Shown in pieces: positions 5,101-61,431 of a stretch of DNA of 64,000 bases (within the stretch, counting starts at the first letter, position 1; each line of letters begins with the position of its first letter). The position numbers were made by a program, and so were the translations under genes. Source of the DNA: Paragordius varius (taxonomy: Eukaryota > Animalia > Nematomorpha); the NCBI GenBank assembly GCA_964247055.1, contig OZ176058.1, positions 2,852,001 through 2,916,000 of the forward strand, in the 5' to 3' direction. A model generated the notes under the pieces. It was not told where the DNA came from. It saw only the letters and a list, made by a program, of their open reading frames with translations, and did not search any database.

Positions 5101-8100
5101 TCATATGACCATCATCTCCATTTATGTCATTTCCTATTAAATCACTATCAGCTGTTAAAGAAGGCGTTTTATTAAAGAGAGGGCAGGTGTAAGAAATATG
5201 TTGCTTATTCAAAGAACTCATTAGTGTATTTCTACCGGCTAAATCTATAAGCGCGCCATTTATACGGAGTGCGGAGACGCATATAATTTTTTCTACATTC
5301 GTTTCCTTTCCTTGTGGATCATTTTTTGGATTTTGGAGGTGATGCACGTGATCTGCATGGAATTCCAGCCAATCAGGAATGGATCCGAGAATAACCATTC
5401 CACCCCCTCTGCGGCTGCCATAAACAGCTGTTATGTCTGCATCAATTAGCAGGCTAGAAGGCGTTTTTAATACTAAAGGCATACTTTTATAACAAGAATT
5501 CATGTTAGGACAAAACATTTTATCGATCGTTAGAGATATTAAATTGGCTGATAAATCAAGAATTAATTCGATATTGTGAGTATTCTTTGATTTGTGTAAA
5601 GTTATTTCAAATTTATTTTTGGCATTTTGGTTTTCAAAATCATTCAACTGTGTAGTTAAAACTTGGAAAGTTATCATTTCGTTTTGTTGATTTTCTTTTA
5701 ATAGAATTGCTTTAATTTCTAGCAACATATTGGGGTTTTTATGATTGAGTTTGGAATTAAAATTGTTATTGAAATAAGTATGGCTATCAAATGTCATAGG
5801 TAACACAATGGATAAGATTGGGAAAGTTACGTTTCGTCGTGTATTAGAGCCTGATTGAGAGGCCATATCAAAAGCCACATCGAAATTCAGAACTATTGGC
5901 TAATAGGTAAAAATATAAATAATGTTTAAACGTTTGTTAAGAGAATAAAATAAAGAAATTAAATAAGTGGTTTATATGTATACAGTGTATAAAAAAATTA
6001 AGATTAAAAATAGTTTTTGAAATAGAGAACTTAAAAAGTGGTCTATATGTATAGTGTGTATAAAAAAATAAGATCAAAAATAGTTTTTAATATAGGGAAC
6101 AAAAAGTGGTTTATATATATCCTGCGTTTAAAATAATTAAAATTATAAATAGTATTTAATAATTTGGATAAAATTCATGGAACAAAAATTGCATAATTAT
6201 TAACAAAAAATACATTAAAATATTAAAAATTGTAACCCTAAATCAAAAATATTAACAATAAGCCCATTACCACAAAGAACATTCAATAATTATGGAATTA
6301 AAACCATTTGTTTCAAACATTTTTTACTTTTTTTCCAATTTACCTGTAAAAATTTATGGTTTTCGAGAATATTCTCACAATCCTGCCCATTTTTCGATTG
6401 AATTAGAGGCGATGAATAATGTTTTGTAGATTTTAAAAGGTCATTCAAACCAGGAAGTATAAGATAAGATAAATCATCAGAATTCGATGGACGGTTTAAT
6501 GCGCCACCAATGTTTAGCGCAATCATACTGTATTCACAACGCGGTCCTCCCCCTTGCATATTAAATGGTGGTGGACATTCACAACTAAATAAATGTCAAT
6601 ATATGTTTTATAAAATATTTTGGCAATAATATAAAAATATTTTTTAAAAATACAAACATAATAATATTTGATAAAAAATAATATAAAATTGATGGCTACA
6701 AATATGTTTTGATCTGTATAATAAATATATTTAAAATATAAAATATTTTTTTGGTAAAAATAAATTAGAAGATTTTTTTATTAAATCTATTTTATATATA
6801 TTATTTTAATTTGGAAGTAAGCAAAATATTCCAGAATTATATAATATAAGAAAATTATTATAATTGAAGGTTTAAAATGCATTTTTGACAAATTAAAACA
6901 TTATACAATTTTAAAATATGCAAAAATAAATGCTTTTTTTTTTTAATATATTTTTGACTTTTTTAATACCAAAAAATTGTTATATTTACAAAAAGATAAT
7001 AATAAAATTTAATTTTCGTTGACAAAAACCACAACCTTAATTTAACTTAAATTTTTAAATTTAGTAAAGTCCTGACAAAAATACCTCTAAAAAATTGTTA
7101 AAAAGAAAAAAATATACGAACCTCGGTCCGGTTATAGGGTTATCTATACAGATACCACCATGGTAACACCAATCAGGACCCAGGAAAACACATGATGTAC
7201 GAACAATTTCTAAATTTTTATTTGTCTCAAAATCATTTTTTGGGTTATCAAACAAATTTTGAGTAGGCAAAACAGCTGGTAAGTGAACAGCTGTTCTATT
7301 TGTATCAATGACGCCAGCTGTTGAAATTTTTTTAAGTGGGGCGGTTTCACTCATTTTGGAGAGCACGTGACATTTATTTTCGATTTCAAAATGATTATCA
7401 TAATCATTATCAATACTAAGGATTTCAATGTCCAATGCTTTGGATATCTTTATTAAAAAATTTATAAAAAATCAATTATAAATTGAAATTATAATTTATA
7501 AAATTATGCGGATAACATATACAAAAAAATTTTTTTGAATATAAATGGCAAAAATGAGTTTTATAAACAAATTCTATCTATATATTAACAGATGCTAATC
7601 TGTTTTTTCCAAAATACTAGGCCAAAAATAAAAGGTATTTTTGGTGTTTTAAGGTCATTATCATGAGAGGTTTAAATAAAATCTTCTTATAAGATGGTGT
7701 TATAAAATAAAATTGTAGTTTACTTTAAAGGTTTTATTGCAAATTTTCATTAAGGATAAATAAATAATATATTGATATTTTAAATTTACTTTCCCTAATA
7801 ATATTATATGCTGTTAGTAAAGTACAACTATTATTAATAAATATATGACAAAGTTTATCCTTTTGTATTAGGTTAACATTAACAAAAAATTATTATCAAA
7901 ATAGGTATTTTGATTTTCATAAATTATTCTAAGCATGGATTAATCAAGGAAAAAATTAAAGAGTTTATGGGTGAATTTAAAACATAGGTGTGTAAAAGGT
8001 ATATAAATAACATTATAAAATAATTTTTATAAAATTAAATTTTTTTATAAAAGTATAAAAAATTACTAAATGTTTCCAATTAGCCAGGATAGTTTGAATT

Positions 8101-10636
8101 TTAAGCCGAGGGACATATTGTAACGTATATTGTGTATTAATTAGCCAATCATATATTAAGCTATCTTGATATCCAGATTGTTTACTATTATCTATATGGA
8201 AAATAAAAATATGAAAAAAAATCAAAAGAAAATATAAAATAAAAGTAATAAAAATATCGAATTTTAAAATAATTTTACGCATCTTAAAATTACATTATCC
8301 GAAAAAATTAAAATGAAAGCTAAATTACCATTTTTGGGTTAATTAATATAATTAAAAACTCCTTTTCCAACTTAAAAGAAATTGTATGATAATTATAAAA
8401 AAAACAACAAATCCCTCTATTCTTAAAAATTTTAAACAAAATAATTTAAGTTGAAACAATGTTACAATTGATAAAAAGAGGTGATTTAATAGTTTAATAT
8501 TTTTTATAATAATTATATTTAAAGTAATTAAAATAATTCTTCAAAATTTCAAAGTAAAACTAAACTAAAACTAAGTTTTTCTTACCAAAATCCTTCCGCA
8601 GTTCTTTTCGAATACGTTCTTCTACCAAATCGGAATTTGCGTTTGTGTTGCTAAAATTTTCATCCGAAATTTTTTCTACTTTATTCTTTGAATCGTAAAT
8701 TGTTTTGATACGATTAACATTAGTTAAGCCAGCCCATGTTTTTACAGCAAATACTAGGCGAGTTTTATAAGGGAAAGATTGACCAACCCTTTCAAGTTTA
8801 AGCAATTCAAAATGTGATGTTTCAATAAGATATTTTAAGTTCTTTTTATAATTAGGATTTTGTTTTTCTATCATGGAAGTTGTTTTCGAAAACGTTTTTA
8901 AAACGCTCAAAAAAGTTTGAAAACTTTTGTAATTTAAATTGCTTTCAGAATTTTTTTGCCGAGAAATTAATGGTAAATGTGTGGCGTGTAGAAATGAGGT
9001 TAAAATTTTTCGTAAGCCTGACCATTTATTAAGTTGGTTCCCAAAAACTGAGTTTCGTGCATAATTATTATTTTGGTTATTTTCATTATTATAATTATTA
9101 TTATTGATTTTGGATGGTTTCGGTTGTTGGACCTAAATTAAAAATTTTAAAAAATAAAAATATGGTTGGATTAATAAATTTAAATAAAAAGTAAATATAT
9201 ATGTAAATTCGATATTAACCGCGAAATTGTGTACAAACTTATTAATTTAATTTGTTTTTAGATATGTACAATAAAACTTTAATTATAGTACCTATAAGTT
9301 TCAACAGATTTATTTCAAAAATATATTTTTCAATATATTCTATAATTACAATAAGTATAAATTTTAAAAAAAATATTCCATTTTAAAAGTAAGTATTTTT
9401 TATAAAAATTATATACTATCGTTATAAGTTAAAATTCTTTAAAAAAATAGCAAATAATGATTTCCAATTTTTTTTTTCAAAAAATAAAGATTAATTTTTC
9501 AAAAATAATTAATAATTTTTACATTTAAAAAATTGTAAGGATAGGTAGGTGTGAGTTGTGTATCCCAAAAACTTTTTGAAGCACCCAAAAATTGTTCCGG
9601 TGAAATATCTAAAATATAAAAATATTTGGAAATATTTTAGAATAAATTATACAAAAACTTAGTTTTAAAATAATTAAATAGAAATTCAATAAAAATATTG
9701 TTTTCAATTGAAAAACTAAAATAAAATCAAATATATATAATAATAAGTCTATTCCACCAATCCTTTTGTAGATATTAATATTTTTATATTTTTTAATAAT
9801 AGTTAAATTATAATTTTCTTAAATATAAACTAAAAAACAAAAAGATTAAAAATTTACATACTTAATAAAAAAAATTAGATATTTATAATTTAAATCGTGT
9901 CATAATTTAATTTTTACCAAGATTTTAAATGTTTAAATATTTTTATTTACAGTAAAAACCAAATTATACGGACAAATAGTAAAAATATAAAGACAAATAT
10001 TTTATTTTATATGTCAATCTACTTTTTAAATCTATATTCATATCAATCTCATTGTTATAAATGGCAAAGTGTGAAATAGAAATATATTACTAACACAATC
10101 AATTCTATATTTTACAATTGTAACTAAATAGCTTATATGAGAAAAATTAAGGTTTTGAAAAGTATGGTTGTCTTTTAGAAAAAAATATTTGTCTTTATAC
10201 GTTTCGTCCGTATATTATTTTTTACAGTACATCATATTTGAGTTTTTTATTTATTAATCAAATATTAACCAAAAATTTTGATTTTTAAAATTAAAAAATT
10301 TAAAACCATTCAAAATGAGAGAAATAGATTGTGTAAATGCCATTTCATCAATCCGTTTAATGTGAACGTAAACTGTGGCCGGGACATTCAGCATGAATTT
10401 AACATCATAAACGTTGAAATCTAACTGATAACTAGCGTCCAATAGGGAAAATCTATAAAAATTTTAAAATAATAAAAATAAAATTATAATTAAATATTTT
10501 AAAATGGTAGATATTTTAAATATAAAAAAATTTCCAAAATAATTAAATTATTAAAAATTTTTAAATAAAAATAAAATTGTAAATAAATAATAAAAATTAT
10601 CTAAATAATAAATATATTAAATATTTATTAAAATAA

Positions 10637-13600: not shown

Positions 13601-16600
13601 TTTTTATATTGTTCAAAAGCTGAAATCGATTGTCCATTTAATACCAACCGAGGTTCTTTAAAGGTATGAGCCTTTCGTTTTATACGATTATTATTGTTAT
13701 TGGAATCAATAAGATTATTTTTATTAAAGCTTTGAAGTGAATAAGTTTGCCGCATATTATATTGTTCAAGAGTTAGGCTAGGTTGATCATTTAAATCGCC
13801 AATAATGATTCGGAGATAATCGATTCCACAAAAGGGTGGAGTCCCAGAATCACAGATACGGACAGGGTAATCAAACCATTTCATAGGCCATTCCTAATGC
13901 AAAAAAAAAGTAAAAAGAAAGAATATTGGTTAAAATTTGTAATTAAATTGGTGAATTAATAATAAAAAAAATGTAAAAATTTAAAGCGTAAAAAGAAAGA
14001 ATATTGGTTAAAATGGTGTTAAATAGAAAGAAAAATGTAAAAATTTAAAGCGTGAAAAGAAAAAAATATTGGTTAAAATGGTGTTTTAATTGGTAAAAAG
14101 AAAAGAATGAAAAAATTTAAAGCATGAAAAGTAAAAAAAAATGGTTAAAATGGCCTTAAATTTGGTGGATAGAAATAATAGTATATTGAAAAGAGAAATA
14201 TTTTAATTGTTGACTAGTTTAAAGTAATATAGAGATAGAATATTGGTTAAAATAGTGTTGAAACGAAAGAAAAATGTAAAATTTGAAACATAAGAAGAAA
14301 AAGAATTGGTTAAAATGGCCTTAAATATGGTGGATAGAAATAATAGTATATTGAAAGAAAAAAATTTTATTTGGATTTGAGTAGAAAGCGATTTGGATAG
14401 AATATAACTTTTTGTTTTTTATAACTTAAGTAAAATCGTAAAGATGTAGAGAAAAGAATGAATATTTGATAAGAAATAATAATTTCCTATTTTGGTTTTA
14501 TGCTTAAAACATAAAAAAGTGTAGTAAAGAAAAATTGTTATAATTGATTTTATAATGATTAGATTAAGGAATATTGGTTTCATTGATTAGATCAAAGCGT
14601 AAAAATTAAGAGAATTAATATTGGTTATTTATTTTTATTATTTTTTATTCCTTATGTTAGAACATAAAAAGTTAAGAAAAAAATATTGGTTAAAATGATG
14701 TTTTAATTGGTGGATAGAAAAATCAACTTATAAAAAGTGTTATTTTTTCGCTTTTACTATTAAAAAAGAATATTTGTAATGTTTTTAATAAGTTGCAAAG
14801 AAAATTATTGGTTAAAAAATGCTGTTTTAATTGGTTTGATTAAGTAAGAATATTAGTTAAAATGACATTTTAACCAATGAATGGAATTTTTTTGGTTAAA
14901 AGGCTGTATTATATAGACATATAGGTTAAAAGGGTGTTTTAATTGTTCATTAAGAAAGAATATTGGCTAAAATTGTAGAATAATCAGTGATGTAGGAAAG
15001 AATATTGATTTGGTGTTTTAAATTTTGGTTAGGTTAAAAAGTAGATGTATAAAGAAATTATTGGTTAAAAGTGTTTTTAATTGGCTTAAAAAGAACCCGC
15101 ATAAAATGGAAAATTAACTACTATTTTTTCAACTTCTAAACGAAAAATATGTTTTTTTTGGCTCAAATAAAAAATAAAATAGTTAAATATATATTATAAA
15201 GTATCGTATGGTTTGTTTTAATACCCAAAACTATTAAATTAAAAGGTCTTTAAATAACACATATAGAATGAAATTATGTTGAAGGTAAATTTTTTCCGTT
15301 TTTATTGGAAAACAATTGCATTGTAAAATAAATTTTAAAGAATACTTGGATTAAAAGAATTCTTTAAATGGTCTTTACATTTCTTTTATTTTATTTAATT
15401 ATTTTATTAAAAACTAATATATATATATATATAAATAAATAAAATTAATTAATAAATTATTTTTCCTTACATTCGATTCTCTATCAATCGCCCTTATAAG
15501 GGTTATCATAGCAGATCCATTTTTATTTGGCCCAGAATCTAAAAAAATATGTTATTATATACAAGATTTTAAAATACTCTGTAAGCTAAAAAATTATAAA
15601 ATTATCTATGTTTGTATAATAAAACTATATAACTTTACAAAATATATTTCAATTCAAAAAATATCCCGACATGCATAATTATTAACTTGAATTTTTAAAC
15701 TAAGAATAGGTATCACGTTAAAGTACATACAAAGCGGATGATGGAATGCCATAAAATTTAAATAGGGGGGGGGGGGGGGGGGGGCTTAATTTTTTTTAAA
15801 AAAACCAACAAAAACTAATTTTGAAAAATTCAACGTTATATTACTCAAATGAATTTAAAAAATTAATCAAAATCCATAAAATAAACCATAATTTAAATTC
15901 CAAATAAAAATTTAAAATAAAATCCACAAAGAACCGCAAAATATCAAATATAGATTATCGTAGATAAAAAAAACCTAAAATACAAAAATATTTCAACATT
16001 TCAATCGCAAAAAAATAAAATTTTTTTTAATGTGTCAATTTTAATCAATTTAAAATTTAAACAAACCTTGAATATGCGTCACATTAAAGTACATACAAAG
16101 CGGGTTGGCATCACAAGGCACGCCATAAAATTTAAAGGGGGGACCATGTCCAGCCACGCCCTCATTATCGGGATCTTGGGCCGTGAAAAGGCCAATGACC
16201 CTGCTGACTACAGATGATTGAGATGAAGTTGCCATGGTAACCGTTTCCATGGCAACTGGGAATTCTGGAATAACAACAGCTGATGGTGATTGCCATGGCA
16301 ATGACGATGATTCATTTATGAAAAAAGATGGAGAGTTGATATTATTAGACTCTACGCTAGTTGACCATGATGGTTTATCTTTGCTAAACAAATTACAATA
16401 AGATAGTTAGAAAGTATTAAAATATAGATATTTTCTATTTAAGTATCCAAAATTAGATATCATAATCTCAAAAATATGAATTATTGAAAATTAAATCAAA
16501 AACATATTAATCAAACACTTAAAATGTTTATTTTATTTGTATATTTGACAATGGTCATTTAACTTTTCTAATCATAATATGTGAAAAATTATTAAAAGAA

Positions 16601-19600
16601 TTGTGTATCTATATATATAATTTTTGATAGACTTATTAATTTCTTATATATAATTACAAAATCTAATTTAAAAACTTACACATAAAAGTAAGCCATATTA
16701 ATTTGAAATCGTGGGTAATTATCATTAATGTCAACCACATCAATTCTCAGCTGAGCGCGACCGGATAAAGATGGCGCACCGCGGTCACGTGCTCTTACAG
16801 TTATAACGACGATATCAGCTGTTTCATAATCCAACTGACCACCGTTCAAAAACACATGACCGGTGGAGTTTATTGTGGCGCTGACGAGGGGTGGATTTAT
16901 GCGTTCAATGGTATAACTGTTAAATAAGATCATATATAATAAAAAATTAATCATAGATTTTTAATATGTTTTGTAATTTTTTGATATAATAAACGTTTTA
17001 TTATTTTTTCCTAAAATAAGATAACCTTTATATGCAGATGATTAATCAATTTATTTTTACCTAAAAAAATATATTATTTATAAAATCAAATTAAAAATTT
17101 AATATAACACAAACTCTAACAATTTTAAATCCAAAACTTAAAATAACTAAAAACCAAAACGTTTAAAAATTCTCTTATATATCCAAAATCTATGAATTTA
17201 AAATCCAAATTTTTTATAAATCTTACTCAAATTCCCCATTAATTCCACTATCAGCATCCCGTGCTTCAAGCCGGTTCAAATATATCGGAAACGTTGTCAG
17301 CTGATTAACAACAGCTGATGTTGGCATGGCGATTCTATTTTGATCGCTTTGTAAAGGGGTATACAGTTCAGGCAAGGCCATGCGTATGAGTGCAGGTGTG
17401 AAAGATGGCGCATTATCGTTAGCATCTGTTATGTTAACAAGAACGAGGGCGGAATCACGAAAGAGGCCATCCGTTACTTCAATCAAGAGGAGAGCTAGTC
17501 GGAAACTAGGTATTTAGGAATAAAATTGAAAAAAATTAATATTTTAAAGAAAATAATTTATAAATATTTTATAAAATTTATAAGTATTAAATAAAATTTT
17601 AAACAAAAAATAAAAAGAAATATAAAAATTGTAAATTTTTGAAAAATTGATTACGTATTTTTAATTTTATGCTAAATATAAATACTTTTATAATATATTT
17701 AACTATCTTGATTTTCAATATAATTCATTGTTTTAAATGGTAAAGTGTGAAATAGAGATATATCACTTTCATACATAAGTTAGTTTAAATTTAGGCTAAT
17801 TTTTTTATAATATATATAACTTAACAAAAGTAATTTTTCATAAATCAATATTTTTCAAAGAAAGAAATAAATTTTGTTAACCCATCTTCAAAATTATCAT
17901 AATCTAAGGTTCTCAGAGCCACAATATCCCCGCCATTTCCATTATTATTTAGCAGATTATTTGAGTTTAAATTAGAATTTTCCAGCAGAGAATTCTGAGG
18001 AGAATTATTAAGCATCTCGATCAGCTGATGCGTATTGGTTTGACTGGCAATGCCGAAATATCGCAATTTATTGCGATTATTTGAAGCGGTACTTAAGGGA
18101 AAATTAAATAATTTTTGTAAAATTCTGAAAATTATAGATAATATATATATATATATATATGGTATGCATTTTAATGGCTCATTTCACACTAGTAGGGCAA
18201 TATTCAACATTTTTTTGTTTTTTCCATACACTATTGGATTGTTGCAAACTGCTTTACTATAGTGTGAAATAAGCAACCATAAAAATTATATTTTATACTT
18301 AAAATATAAAAACTAGTAAATTTTGTCAAAGTTGTAAAAATTTTTGCCAAATCTTAATATAATAATACCATATATTTTGATAATTTAATTATCGATTAAC
18401 TTTATTAATTTAATTATAATGAAAATATATTATAATTGTAGTGATAAATTCCTTCGAAAAATATTCAATTTAGAAACATAATTTGACCACTTTTAAAATT
18501 GAGTTTAATCAGGCAAATTTTTAAAAAACTACGTATAACAAAAAATAAATTGAGATAATTATTATAAAAATCCAAATATAATATTATTTAAATTAATTTA
18601 AATATAAACCCGAATTTTAAAAAAAAATTGATAAAAACCTCAAAAAACTGGAGAGTAAACCCGCTGCCAGCAGCTTAGCTTCAATATCAATCAGCTGATT
18701 TTTATTTTCCATATAGGATGTAGTAGTGCTTGAAGTTTCTTGCTGCAAAACCATAGAAATAAAGCTGGCTTCTGGGCTCATGGACCATTCTTCGTTTGTT
18801 TTATAGGTCTGTGGAGGAAAAATAAAATAATATATTAGAGAAATTAAAAAACTAATTTTATAGTAAATTTTAAAACTATATATTGTTTATACCTTATCGG
18901 TTTTTTGTTTTAAAAATCAATTATATACTCTTCTCATTTTGGGCGTGTGAACTAATTGAATACATATACATCAATAAAGCACCTAAACTAAAACATCTTT
19001 TTATACAAAATTTAACAACCGCTTTTGCAGGACATCAGCTGTTTTAATTTTTTCACCATTCAAAACAATCTTAACATAGGCTTATGCAAAAACAAACGTT
19101 TATAGCGCAACTTTTTATTTCCAAATATACCATTTACAATTCAAATTCACCCTTAAACAATTCAAATTCACCTTTGAACAATTCAAATTCACCCTTGAAC
19201 AATTCAAATTCACCCTCAAACAATTCAAATTCACCCTCAAATAAAATATATGTTTTTAGATTAAAAATTACCGATATTTTTATATATTTTTAAAAAATAA
19301 AAAATTTTGTTTTAAATTAAAATAATACTGAAAAAATAATAAACTATGCCATAAAATCATATTTCTTATTAATAATAAGTTATTTTAGTTTGAAAACACT
19401 TAATTTATTTTTAGGGTGAATTTGAATTGTTCAAGGGTGAATTTGAATTGTTCGAGGGTGAATTTGAATTGTTCAAGGGTGAATTTGAATTGTTAAAGGG
19501 TGAATTTGAACTGTAAATGGTATATATATTTATAGGCACTAAAGACGAAAATACATAAAATAAAATCAGCTGTTTTTTTCTGATAAAAATTAATTGTGAC

Positions 19601-30600: not shown

Positions 30601-33600
30601 ACGCACAAAACATAGCACTTCTCAAAAAAATTTGAAAAATTTCATGCATCAAAACCCTGATAAAAAACGTCATAACTTTTCACACAAAGCGAATTCTTAA
30701 AAACACACTCCAAATCTCAAAAAAGCAAGATTATTTTTAAAAATTTATTGTAAAATATGTTTTTTCGTACTGAACTCTTGGATCCTGGTACATGCTAAAA
30801 GCTGCTAGGCGAGCCACTATACTTCCTCGTGGAGCCATTTCACTCAACCGGGTCACGTGATAAGGAGCACCAATCCAAGCGGGCGGTTCAATGTCACGTC
30901 CCGTGACTATGATCCGTACACTGACGGTGCTACTAAGGGCTGGTGTGCCCTTATCTTGCGCTATGGCTGTAAGGTTAAAATCACCGCTTTCCTGCAAAGT
31001 GAAATAAAATTATTCATTTTTTGTAAAATAATTGTATTAAAAGAAAAATTAAATAAAATTATATTTTTGAATAAATTTTTTTTTTGAAAATGGTATACAT
31101 TCCTCAAAAACGCAAATGTCTAAACTATCCCAAAAAACAAAACTATTCGAAAATCGGTTAATTCCGATATTATAAAAATATTTACCAGTTAATTCATACC
31201 TTTTTCTAGAAAATCTAAAGATAAACGAAATTCTTCAATTTCAACAAACTTTCATAAAAACACTTTCCAACCTAAATCTTGCTCCGTACTTACCCCAATG
31301 AGAGGCGCTCCCACACTTATCCACCCCGTTTCAGGATCTATCGTAAATAGATCCGTTCCCAAAAGCTGTTCTAAACTTTCAGCAGAAGTTTTCTCTTCTC
31401 CCTCAGAACTTTTGTCCAGCTGTTTTGTGGCGCCAAAAGATGACGATGATGACATGAAATCTGGGGCTGTCCAAATGGCATGAGCATCGCTATTAGCCTT
31501 AACCAAACCATAACTAATTTCCCCATTAGGTCCTTCATCAGGATCGCTGGCAGAAACGCGTAAAAAGGGTGTATGAACGGGTGTACCAGCCTCTACGCTT
31601 TTATCATACCGACTTTGGCTGAAACTGTATTGATAGAACGAAAAATGAAAAATGTGAATTTAGAAGGACTATGTTGGTTAATTTGAGAAATATAAATTTG
31701 ATATATACCATTTGCACTTCAAGAGTGTCCTTGAACACTTCAAGTTGGTCCTCGAACAATTCAAGTTGGTCCTTGAACAAAAGTTGGTCCTTGAACAGTT
31801 CAAGTTGGTCCTTGAACATTTCAAATTGGTCCTTAAAAGTTCAAGTTGGTCCTTGAACATTTCAAGTTGGTCCTTGAACAGTTCAAGTTGGTCCTTGAAC
31901 ATTTCAAATTGGTCCTTAAAAGTTCAAGTTGGTCCTTGAACATTTCAAGTTGGTCCTTGAACAGTTCAAGTTGGTCCTTGAACATTTCAAGTTGGTCCTT
32001 GAACATTTCAAGTTAGTCCTTGAACAGTTCAAGTTGGTCCTTGAACATTTCAAACTTGAAGTGTTCAAGGACACTCTTGAAGTGCAAATGGTCTTGAAGT
32101 GTTCGAGGACACTCTTGAAGTGCAAATAGTATATGTATGAGTTTATGAATAATATAGTGTAGTTTGAAAAAAAGTAAAAATGAATAAGAATCGGAAAATA
32201 GATATTATAGGTATAATTCATATCAACTCTGACCTAAAGAGAATGCGCATAAAAAAGGTAAAAACGTAAAAATTGATAACATCGAATATGTATGTATAAC
32301 AATTTAAATATAAAACTTTATGCAAAAATTTAACACATATATAAATAGTGGATCACGTTTATACATATTTTCAATTAATTCTTAAATAAAAACGTACCTC
32401 GGTTCATTATCATTTCGATCGCCAATATTAACAGTGAAAGTACAAACCCCAATAAGTGGTCGGTCTCCCCGGTCTGTAGCGGTTACCGTTAGAGATCGCT
32501 TATAACCACCAGAAACAGCGGATGAAGCAGAGCTTAGCGTATTAGAAGCGGACCCTGAAACGAGATGGAGAGATTCTTCACGATCCAGAGGTATGGCTGT
32601 TTTAACCAGCTAGAAATATTTCAAACAAAAAAAGGTTATATTTTACATTTCATGAATAAAAATATTATAAAATAACCACAAAATACCGGATAATATTTAC
32701 AAAATTTCCAAATAAATAATAAAAGAACACCATAAACGCAAAAATTCATAATTTGTCCACATAAATTCGCTAGAAATCTCAAAATTGTTTTAGAAACGCC
32801 AAATGCACAATTCAATAAAAATCTCTAAATTACCAAAAATTACGAATTCGCGAAAAAACTTCAAAAGATCACTAGAAATGTTTAAATTTCTGTAAAACCC
32901 ACACCCCAGTATTAGGTTTGATGGTAAAAACCGGGCAGGCTCGGCCCGGTAGATATTGTAGCGGACATGTAAATTTACTATGGCTATCAATAGCTCGGAC
33001 CGTTACCCGTGTACTTAGGGAGAGATAATTTTTGCGTAAATTATTATTAATACTTGCAAGAACAATCATACTTTTAATTGCAAAATTTTGTTAACAACAA
33101 TGATATTTCATTTAAAAACCCATATGACACCCAAAATCCCAATATTCTGCTAGCGATGTCAAAATATGAAAAACTCAAGGCTTCGCTAAAATATCCGGAT
33201 TTTTCCTGAAACCTTAAAATTTTGCTATAATAAAACCTTAAAAACCTAATCCAGTATCAGGTTCTATTGTAATAACCGGTCTTGCTCGACCCGGTTCAAT
33301 ATTGTAACGGCCTTGTCCATCCAGTCCGCTACCTCTATTAATAGGACAGTTATAACTGGTGTCTCGAGGGGAATATTCTGAGTAAACTCTCAAAATGTTA
33401 TTACCTCAAACTTTTCCATTCATATTTAGATAAAAACCTCAAAATTTTGCCAAACCAAATGAAGACCAAAATCTTGGATACGTCCAAAATTGATTGGATT
33501 TATTAAATTATAATAAAAACTTCTGACTTTCTGGTAGAAACCTCAAATTTTAACAAAACATTTAGCTTTTTAATAAAAATTTAGTGACCGATATATATTT

Positions 33601-57446: not shown

Positions 57447-58199
57447 TTAAAAGAGATGATAGTAAAATATGATTATTTGCCTACGCAGCTGATATGATCT
57501 GTATAATTCTACTTCCGCATTTGCACAAATTAGTCTCTACCCGCATAACTTTTTCCTATGCACAATTTACCAACGAAGATTGCATCCTTAAAACTACTAC
57601 ATTATAAACATCTAAATTTTTTAGATCAAAAATAAATTTACCACAATAAAATTAATATTGGGTTCATGGCAAAAGCTTGATGATAGAATAAACAGAGGCT
57701 TTTATTTGAAAAAATCAATTAATTAACATGCTATCTAAACATAACTGCAAAACAGATTTTGGATGTTACAAAAAATGCCAGCGCTGAAGTTTAGACATCT
57801 CTCCACACTCGTGAAAGACGCCATTTTAAAAATTAATTCAAATATCAAAATCCTCCCTTATCTTTTCACTATTTTGATTTTACATTTTGTTAGTTTTATA
57901 TCCCAGAACTTAACAAAACTAAAAATTATTAATCAAATATTAAACATCGTTATCAATAATATATTTTTTAGATTTTTGTGATTTCTTGGGTTTTAAATTG
58001 GGACAGCTTAACACGAAGGAAACGAACATTAAAATTATAATATATACAGTTATTGCTGGTAAATTGTAACCTGTTTTAAATGCTATCTACTAACATTTCT
58101 CCACACCTATTTGCCTGTTGAAGCTTAAAAAACTTTATAGAAAAAAATGGCGGCAGAAAAAAAGATGAGGATTTTAATCTTATTGAACATTTTTTACAA

Positions 58200-59553: not shown

Positions 59554-60198
59554 TATCACATTTGCGCTTCAAAAGTGTCCTTACACACTTCAAGTTGGTC
59601 TTTGAACATTTCAGGTTAGTCCTTTAACAATTCGAATTGGTCCTTGAACACTTCAAGTTGCTCCTTAAAATTTTGAAATTTTTACTTAACCATAATTTTT
59701 GCATGTACTTTTTAATTTTATTATTTGTTAATCTAATTTTCTTTATTTATTACATATTTTTCATTTAAAAATGAAAACTTTCATTCAAAAACCACTTTTT
59801 TGTTTTTAACTAATTTTTTTTCACTTTAACAAATTCATTCTAAAATTGCAAATAATAACCGACAAAACTTATATATTTTTTTGATTTGGAGTAAAATCTT
59901 TTAAAAGTCCAAAACAATATTAATATTGATATACGATTTTTTAATGATTAAAAGTTGATATTGATTTAAAATTTATCTTAAATAATAGAAAAAGGTTAAA
60001 AACGATAAAATAAATGAATGATTTACGATTTGATTGATAAAAGTTAAAACAAAACAAAAAATGTTAAAGGACCTATTTGAAGTGTTCAAGGACCAATTTG
60101 AAGTGTTCAAGGACCAACTTGAAATGTTCAAGGACCAACTTGAGGTGTTCGAGGACCAACTTGAAGTATTCAAGGACGCTTTTAAAGTGCAAATGGTA
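59554..60198. mobile_element. MITE family B
   Basis: catttgcgcttcaaaagtgtcc..aagttggtc at the left end; inverted aaggaccaacttgaa units and aagtgcaaatggta at the right end. Confidence 0.85.
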
Positions 60199-61431
60199 TA
60201 TCAGGATTATGATGGACCATTTGGTTTTGTTTATATAGCACCCCATTTGTAGGATCTGATACATATCAGAAAAACCCAAAATTTGCACACATTTTGCAAA
60301 ATAAATTTTTTTTTATTCCAAAAATATCGCTAAAATATAGCACATCAAGGTAAAATATATATAAAGTAAAATCTAATTCTAAATAGATTATCCAAAACGA
60401 TTTTGCTGCACGCAAAAACGATATTAATATTTTCTAGATTAGCTGTGTTCAACCGCTTCTCCAAAATATTTTGTGCAGTCTGCCGAAAATTTAAAAATAG
60501 GCTATTTTCAAATCATATAATTTTTGTAACAAATTTGCTCAATAATTCGTAAATTTGTCAACAAACTTGCAAAAATTAGTGAAATTATAATAAGAACATT
60601 GTGTTCGGATGTTACAGTTCTATGTTTAAAATCAAATAAAATAGTTTTTCGGGGCACCGAAGCCATTTGTTTTGAGCCACCTAGGCTATAATCCAAGGGT
60701 GGGCAGATTTTATAATTTTTGTTTTTTTATTTTGGATGATATATCTTCGAAATAATCGTAAATTTTTGATTAAAATCTAATTTATTATTATTTTAACATT
60801 TTTATGAGCACTTTTGCCTATCGAGCAAAGCGTGTTGGACCCTCTATAATATAACTAAAAAAATATATTTTTAACAAACTGTTAAAGCGCATGATATTTT
60901 CAAGCATGAAAGAAAAGTGTAGCTTTTGTTTATTAAATTTCTTATATAATTTGATAATTTTGAACATTTTTATAACCTCATAGTTACATTATAATACGGA
61001 TCGGTTTATCAAAAGCGTTTTTGAATTTAAAATTAAATAGAATTTTGTTCTGCTGAAATTTGAAAAACTATAATTTAATCAAAGTTTTATGATAATTTAA
61101 TTTTTATGACATTAAAATATATATAAATAAATGCATTTAAATTAAAGCGTCATTATACCGTTTCATAACCATAAAAAAAATACAGTCTAAATGTTTAAAA
61201 AATTAATATTTAAGGTTTGCATTTTTTAAAAATGTTGTATTTTATGGTATAATTATAATTACAATAAATTAATTTTCTTATAGTAAAATCTCGGCTTTTG
61301 TGCGTATTTTAATAAAACAAGCCCATATTAGAGGTAAAAGGGGTTTAAATTTAAGATTTTCGAGGTTCATATCCAAAAAATTTATAAAATTCTTTCATTT
61401 TTTTAACAATATTACAGTGTGAATTTTAATA

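Follow-up and report, generated by a model that had tools for sequence, protein, structure and literature searches.

Two RFX-type X-boxes in a coding exon of a giant hairworm cadherin gene, one probable case of a genome-wide DNA-level pattern

Within a coding exon of a giant cadherin gene of the hairworm Paragordius varius lie two exact matches to the RFX X-box, one base apart, followed by a weaker third, and the same word proved to be in large excess across the genome, chiefly in open reading frames where its free third codon positions are strongly biased. The reading that we favour, and hold to be probable though well short of assured, is that the boxes are RFX-type sites kept at the DNA level in a coding insertion that tolerates them, and that they represent one case of this genome-wide pattern. 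The window, meaning the whole stretch of 64,000 nucleotides that was analysed, is C9:2852001-2916000 of a 110.6-Mb assembly in 44 contigs (11 of them large). Its G+C content is about 23%, and the genome as a whole is very AT-rich, its non-coding DNA being about 80% A+T. The features on which the argument rests, in window coordinates, are the following:

4052-56028, minus strand: giant multi-exon cadherin gene (approximate span, from the first to the last long ORF)
16680-16954, minus strand: exon before the boxed exon (its upper bound is that of the ORF), with a GTAAGT donor at 16679 and the end of a cadherin repeat, ...DINDNYPRF... (PF00028, E 3e-6)
16067-16383, minus strand: predicted coding exon with the boxes (open frame, codon score), flanked by an ag acceptor (16385-16384) and a gt donor (16066-16065)
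16228-16241: X-box 1, GTTGCCATGGTAAC on the plus strand; on the coding (minus) strand GTT ACC ATG GCA AC, giving VTMAT, phase 0
16243-16256: X-box 2, GTTTCCATGGCAAC on the plus strand; on the coding strand GTT GCC ATG GAA AC, giving VAMET, phase 0
16275-16284: copy of the palindromic E-box word AWCAGCTGWT, AACAGCTGAT, between boxes 2 and 3
16289-16302: near X-box 3, ATTGCCATGGCAAT on the plus strand; in another phase, giving LPWQ

Boxes 1 and 2 are separated by a single C, with a period of 15 bp (5 codons), and both match GTHNYY AT RRNAAC exactly, that is, a 14-bp inverted repeat with a 2-nt spacer. Box 3 departs from the consensus at both outermost bases and is a weaker match, and a CAGCTG at 16277-16282 lies 20 bp past box 2 and before box 3. 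The original prediction, which described two boxes 1 bp apart, a CAGCTG and a near-third box within 75 bp, had all these sequence elements in the right place, and was also right to call them true RFX X-box matches, boxes 1 and 2 fitting the consensus exactly and box 3 only nearly. The 29-bp inverted repeat that it saw in boxes 1 and 2 is real, with 13/14 of the arms complementary, but it is a trivial consequence of two near-palindromic 14-mers standing side by side. The same two boxes also form a head-to-tail, in-frame direct repeat of 15-bp units, GTTGCCATGGAAACG and GTTACCATGGCAACT, which are identical at 12 of 15 positions. All three differences between the units fall at positions that the X-box consensus leaves free, an outcome that by our own estimate has a chance of roughly 1 in 27. 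Since box 3 is read in a different phase, it is not part of this 15-bp peptide repeat.

The window contains no further X-box matches. When the C. elegans-style consensus GTHNYYATRRNAAC was used, boxes 1 and 2 were the sole sites in the 64-kb window, with 4 strand matches against 0.59 expected, a number reached in 1 of 100 shuffles of the window. The perfect palindrome GTTGCCATGGCAAC, allowing up to 2 mismatches, found only boxes 1, 2 and 3 in the window (3 sites against 0.03 expected), and none of 100 shuffles got to 3. With neither word did shuffled sequence show such boxes at a similar frequency.

The minus strand of the boxed exon gives ...SLPWQSPSAVVIPEFPVAMETVTMATSS... as an open frame, whose first 190 nt or so are S/T-rich and without cadherin homology, and whose last 125 nt or so encode ...AQDPDNEG... 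(VIGLFTAQDPDNEG), as is usual halfway through a cadherin repeat. A Pfam search, in which exons were searched singly rather than as a spliced cadherin protein model, returned no family for the boxed exon and Cadherin for the exon before it, as expected from the earlier description of an S/T-rich stretch unrelated to cadherins. Because this stretch of about 45-60 residues is flanked by the Cadherin-matching exon and by the cadherin-repeat tail, it looks like an insertion within one cadherin repeat. The site had been placed about 40 kb into the gene, and we obtained the same figure, the distance from the boxes to the putative first exon (the ORF ending at 56028) being about 39.7 kb. By codon-usage score the proposed frame was the best of the three frames on its strand in both halves of the exon, and in the insertion the antisense frame equalled it; the S/T-rich part is therefore likely, rather than proven, to be coding, as judged from its open frame and codon score.

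The RNA runs examined gave no coverage of this stretch, and low-depth DNA runs labelled as other organisms proved to be of the same species, showing 0-2 differences and no listed change in the boxes. A word search for an orthologue of the boxed exon, made with that exon and with its neighbour, found nothing, and an exhaustive search with the neighbouring exon gave thousands of cadherin matches, which were only generic many-repeat cadherins, none of them matching the other exons.

The excess of the word extended to the whole genome. With up to 1 mismatch, GTTGCCATGGCAAC occurred at 100 sites, 9 of them perfect, against 1 site for the reversed word and 4 for GGCAACATGTTGCC, a CpG-free, composition-matched palindrome with everted halves, so that the X-box outnumbers its composition-matched controls by a factor of about 25-100. 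X-boxes stood in pairs, no more than 30 bp apart, in 9 places, where the control had none; besides the pair in the cadherin gene, two other strict pairs, at C2:12542423 and C8:1084494, have its one-base gap and 15-bp period. A genome scan had been proposed as a measure of how unusual such matches are, and both the single sites (100 against 1 and 4) and the close pairs (9 against 0) came out in favour of the motif.

The sites also carry preferences of the RFX type. Among 118 genome-wide matches to GTTRCC-N0-5-GGYAAC the 2-nt spacer AT was present in 58, and the base just outside the X-box was biased towards C/G, with C in 45 of 110 symmetrised flanks; both the flanks and the spacer agree with the 16-mer RFX motif of SELEX experiments. 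For the context of the sites we looked at X-boxes at C9:1109786, C9:4293611 and C9:4301508 and cut out a sample of 55, of which 54 proved to be independent. With only one related pair, a repeat family or paralogy was rejected as the cause of the excess for the sampled loci, whose flanks were unrelated to each other and where no target-site duplications were seen. The copies of the paralogues at C9:4293k and C9:4301k are too alike for their kept boxes to be informative; in non-coding arrays, for example at C9:1215320, boxes persist while the spacers between them diverge.

Most sites lie in sequence that looks coding. An open frame of 75 codons or more, with the G+C of exons, enclosed 50 of the 55 sampled sites, and in a slightly larger set of 59 loci 88% were in such frames, compared with 30% of nearby random positions. 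All three phases were used: phase 0 at 35 sites, with the peptide V-A/T-M-A/V-T, phase 1 at 12 sites, with G-Y/C-H-G-N, and phase 2 at 3 sites, with L-P-W-Q. When strand matches to GTNRCNATGGYNAC (GTN RCN ATG GYN AC) were collected, 116 of 227 proved to be GTTRCCATGGYAAC, with the wobble bases T, C and A at the three free third positions, which amounts to 51% against the 2.5% expected from codon usage in the ORFs carrying the sites. This fixation implies that it is the nucleotide word that is kept and that the peptides follow from it, a constraint measured over the genome as a whole. V-x-M-x-T was accordingly rejected as a functional peptide motif, given the three phases and the motif-specific wobble bases. 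That the DNA sites come first and the peptide is their by-product, as suggested originally for this one exon, has strong genome-wide backing, from the wobble bias, from the three phases and from the unrelated genes in which the boxes occur.

Two sites are exceptions, accounted for by protein domains: GYHGN in an EGF repeat, and GCRGN in what reads to us as a Kunitz-type motif. The box-bearing exons belong to genes such as HSF, a cyclin, kinases, a C2H2 zinc finger and a TAZ/CBP-like finger, and most boxes fall in domain-free, low-complexity stretches. One locus was compared across genera, the HSF exon, which is 68% identical to the Gordionus protein. Its box, a 1-mismatch variant, encodes VVMAT, and because this box peptide is replaced in Gordionus, which has ...APGMVS... 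there, the HSF site is, on the evidence of this alignment, lineage-specific and not ancient.

The CAGCTG between boxes 2 and 3 belongs to a different and much commoner word. The window holds 23 copies of AWCAGCTGWT against 0.08 expected and 47 CAGCTG cores against 1.3 expected, all but one of the cores lying between 5147 and 53013, inside the cadherin gene. At about one CAGCTG per 230 bp throughout the exon-like sequence of this gene, a copy among the boxes is unremarkable. Genome-wide, AWCAGCTGWT, which is Ohler core-promoter motif 5 of Drosophila, occurs 4072 times, compared with 537 occurrences of the word reversed; at X-box loci it is 4.6 times as frequent as the genome mean. An X-box and a CAGCTG within 60 bp of each other were seen at 27% of the 55 sampled sites and in 14% of GC-matched windows of the same loci, which is not significant (p = 0.058). 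With that result, and with the gene saturated with CAGCTG, a specific exonic composite of the two words finds no support, and the CAGCTG noted originally among the boxes is nothing particular to this spot, being one of 47 cores spread through the gene. Fixed composites do occur in two non-coding arrays, as X-box + GATAAT + CAGCTG in one and X-box + CAT + CAGCTG in the other.

A candidate reader of the X-boxes is encoded in the genome. A search for the RFX DNA-binding domain, also suggested at the outset, found one such gene (PF02257 at C3:10643513, E 9e-20; 78.5 bits on the ORF), whose domain is intact across a 26-nt intron, the wing motif ...RRLGTR/GNSKYHYYG continuing over it. An affinity with myxozoans or dicyemids, which so short an intron would suggest, was set aside in view of the Gordionus match of the HSF exon and of the inverted repeats in the mitochondrial contig. 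Five of six cilia families, namely IFT57, BBS5, IFT46, PACRG and tektin, gave no match in the genome, and the sixth, CFAP20, was present (E 1e-25). As CFAP20 was recovered exon by exon, the search method can detect split genes, and cilia genes are apparently missing from this genome. These absences agree with the loss of cilia genes in hairworms that Cunha et al. are said to have described in 2023. The original link of the boxes to ciliary and neuronal genes is not supported by these results: five of the six cilia families are without a match, and the box-bearing genes are of the HSF, cyclin, kinase, zinc-finger and TAZ/CBP-like kinds. We consider a ciliary role of the boxes unlikely, and a neuronal role finds no support.

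Several other explanations deserve to be weighed against RFX-type sites kept at the DNA level. The X-box and the commoner AWCAGCTGWT could together form a gene-body code, marking the exons and introns of certain genes so as to license their expression or to tell genes from repeats, with RFX or another dimer as a mere reader. The genome-wide excess of the E-box word (4072 against 537) and its 23 copies in the cadherin gene would fit such a code, as would its 4.6-fold enrichment at X-box loci and the fixed composites of the non-coding arrays. Yet the proximity of the two words in exons is not significant, the E-box word outnumbers X-boxes about 40 to 1, X-boxes sit in tight local clusters instead of running through whole genes, and the cadherin gene itself has 47 E-boxes and a single X-box spot, so we regard a shared code as unlikely, if still deserving of some weight. 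A little less probable again, in our judgement, is that the pair is a neutral by-product, an in-frame slippage duplication in a low-complexity insertion that resembles X-boxes by chance and has no DNA-level function at this locus. Slippage alone can explain the pair, as a 15-bp direct repeat (12/15) coding VAMET and VTMAT in S/T-rich, low-complexity surroundings, and Gordionus lacks the peptide that the HSF site encodes. What chance resemblance leaves out is that the word is 25-100 times over-represented with its wobble bases fixed, that box 3 is in a different phase and outside the peptide repeat, and that the unit differences keep to consensus-free positions (about 1 in 27).

A mutational or selfish origin, in which some mechanism with sequence specificity, such as template switching, the footprint of a nuclease or transposase, or biased conversion, would make or insert 14-16-mer palindromes in-frame, has a parallel in the coding palindromes of hairworm mitochondria. 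The 15.7-kb mitochondrial contig of this assembly contains perfect inverted repeats of 80 nt and 69 nt, a hallmark of Nematomorpha (PMC6649704); the 15-bp unit is exactly 5 codons, and the sites are found in tolerant, disordered segments. However, the composition-matched palindrome is not enriched, and any such process must therefore be specific to the X-box word; the sites favour the spacer and flanking bases that RFX prefers, and the loci have unrelated flanks and no visible target-site duplications. An origin of this type seems improbable to us. We give very little credence to the proposal that the palindromes work at the RNA level, the mRNA forming a hairpin or offering a protein-binding site that would serve as a splicing enhancer, a localisation signal or a translation signal. 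Although the sites are overwhelmingly in exon-like transcribed sequence and folding predictions have the boxes base-paired to one another, this fold is no better than those of shuffles (z = -1.3), for which reason an RNA hairpin was rejected. The two-fold symmetry, the RFX-like spacer and the flanks point to a dimer on double-stranded DNA, and boxes are present in the non-coding arrays too; neither the window nor the non-coding arrays of X-boxes gave a match to a known structured RNA.

If the boxes are RFX-type sites kept in a tolerant coding insertion, the likeliest mechanism would be binding by dimers of the single RFX protein, strong at boxes 1 and 2 and weak at box 3, and the bound boxes would act as an intragenic regulatory or chromatin-organising site. 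The pair itself probably arose by in-frame 15-bp duplication of one box, and across the genome X-boxes in coding exons would dictate codons and short peptides. We infer RFX binding from the identity of the motif, its spacing, its flanks and its genome-wide excess. Any effect on transcription is a further step in the same reasoning, for which the candidates are activation, repression, and a chromatin or gene-body mark made together with the E-box word. Of the original interpretation, then, the X-box identity, the RFX gene and the peptide as by-product stood, and the ciliary or neuronal link and the specificity of the CAGCTG found no support.

We also propose, tentatively and as a scenario that we find possible more than probable, that cilia genes were apparently lost, that RFX was redeployed, and that its sites and AWCAGCTGWT were overprinted on exons as the main cis-regulatory carriers, with VAMET and VTMAT as the price paid at the protein level. 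If RFX does bind these sites, nature would have provided, in exceptionally clear form, two codes on the same bases, with a long and specific transcription-factor word fixing codons and making peptides in dozens of unrelated genes. Such binding would also offer an example of the fate of the RFX regulon once cilia are lost, and for the cadherin gene it would mean that the S/T-rich insertion of one repeat owes its existence to the DNA sites, not to the protein. A wobble bias of 51% against 2.5% makes the question directly testable.

The closest known system is the RFX/DAF-19 X-box, GTNRCC-N1-3-RGYAAC (GTHNYY AT RRNAAC in C. elegans), of ciliary-gene promoters in nematodes, flies and vertebrates (PMC2375033, PMC10393296). 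The hairworm boxes share with it the 14-bp imperfect palindrome, the 2-nt AT spacer and the C/G flanks, and here too the genome encodes an RFX domain and the motif is over-represented. Unlike those promoter-proximal sites, the present ones are exonic and coding, some 40 kb inside the gene, and most sites of the P. varius genome are exonic, in genes that are not ciliary. RFX factors are also at work in cells or organisms without cilia, as with yeast Crt1, fission-yeast Sak1 and the mammalian RFX1/MDBP, RFX5 and RFX7. For RFX7 the setting is documented as non-ciliary (PMC8287911). These factors resemble the present case in showing that programmes other than the ciliary one can make use of RFX and X-boxes, through intragenic sites and by repression among other ways. 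To our knowledge, however, no non-ciliary RFX factor has its sites mostly in coding exons under codon-level constraint.

Duons, or exonic enhancers, are stretches where the protein code overlaps a DNA-binding code and codon choice is constrained. The X-boxes are like them in that the site constrains synonymous positions, here to the genome-wide 51% against 2.5%. In vertebrate duons the reported effect is subtle and spread across many motifs, whereas here there is one long palindrome with a 20-fold wobble bias, in short peptide insertions and in three phases. The AWCAGCTGWT word is, like the X-box, a palindrome over-represented in exons, but it differs in its likely reader, which would be of the bHLH type, and in its distribution, being gene-wide where the X-box keeps to one spot. 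Finally, the mitochondrial genes of Nematomorpha carry coding palindromes of up to 284 bp and of varied sequence (PMC6649704). They show that in the same phylum inverted repeats are tolerated in coding sequence; what sets the X-boxes apart from them is the recurrence, across many genes, of one short and specific word in the nuclear genome.

The AWCAGCTGWT palindrome, an E-box word with the core CAGCTG, saturates the whole cadherin gene, with 23 copies across window positions 5147-53013. The same interval holds 47 CAGCTG cores, 30 of which lie in exon-like sequence, and the sole CAGCTG of the window outside the gene is found at 57486. Elsewhere in the genome, we identified two non-coding arrays of X-boxes (RFX-type 14-bp palindromes), each numbered below on a local piece of the assembly:

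L027:1800-3920 (G000:C10:3119301-3121415), non-coding X-box array, 9 boxes
L030:1320-1930 (G000:C9:1215320-1215930), non-coding X-box array, 6 boxes

In both arrays the distance from each X-box to the element that comes after it, CAT-CAGCTG or GATAAT-CAGCTG, is constant. Tandem Repeats Finder did not call the units of either array, their divergence being too great, and an Rfam search of the two arrays returned no match. A near X-box variant, GTTGCTATGGTAAC, occurs in at least 8 copies across G000:C7:1788906-2293165, and since these recur on one strand at a spacing of 30-150 kb, the results suggest that the near X-box is part of a repeat family, either dispersed or segmental.

In the window, the intron downstream of the boxed exon contains a partial, decayed copy (~70 nt) of the 3' end of that exon, and tandem repeats occupy two sites, one in a cadherin intron and the other upstream of the gene:

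window 15700-15790, minus strand, decayed partial exon copy resembling 16075-16145 of the boxed exon
window 31604-32221 and 59973-60288, tandem repeats with open frames on both strands

An 8-nt gap shifts the frame of the exon copy, which adjoins a G run of ~25 nt (15766-15790). The neighbouring stretch 15564-15957 is probably a high-copy repeat, because its summed contig depth was very high in three sequencing runs. Several frames of the tandem repeats are open (KDQLE[LV]F.., SRTNL[NK]C.. and SSWSLN..).

Among cilia genes, one with a CFAP20 domain was found in the genome, whereas five other families had no match; an HSF gene adjoins it, with an X-box variant in its first coding exon. The mitochondrial contig (G000:C44; 15,693 bp) carries perfect inverted repeats, with arms of 80 nt and 69 nt, within its first 1.5 kb, and its cox1 (7480-8820) contains six in-frame TGA codons. 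Finally, the RFX DNA-binding domain is interrupted by a 26-nt intron (gtatgg...ttttag):

G000:C4:4468900-4470066, CFAP20-domain gene
L087:613-893 (G000:C44), perfect mitochondrial inverted repeats
L016:1693-1718 (G000:C3), 26-nt intron of the RFX gene

In a 2026 survey, animal introns as short as this were confined to myxobolid myxozoans and one dicyemid (PMC13644364), and given that survey 26-nt introns in a hairworm would be new.
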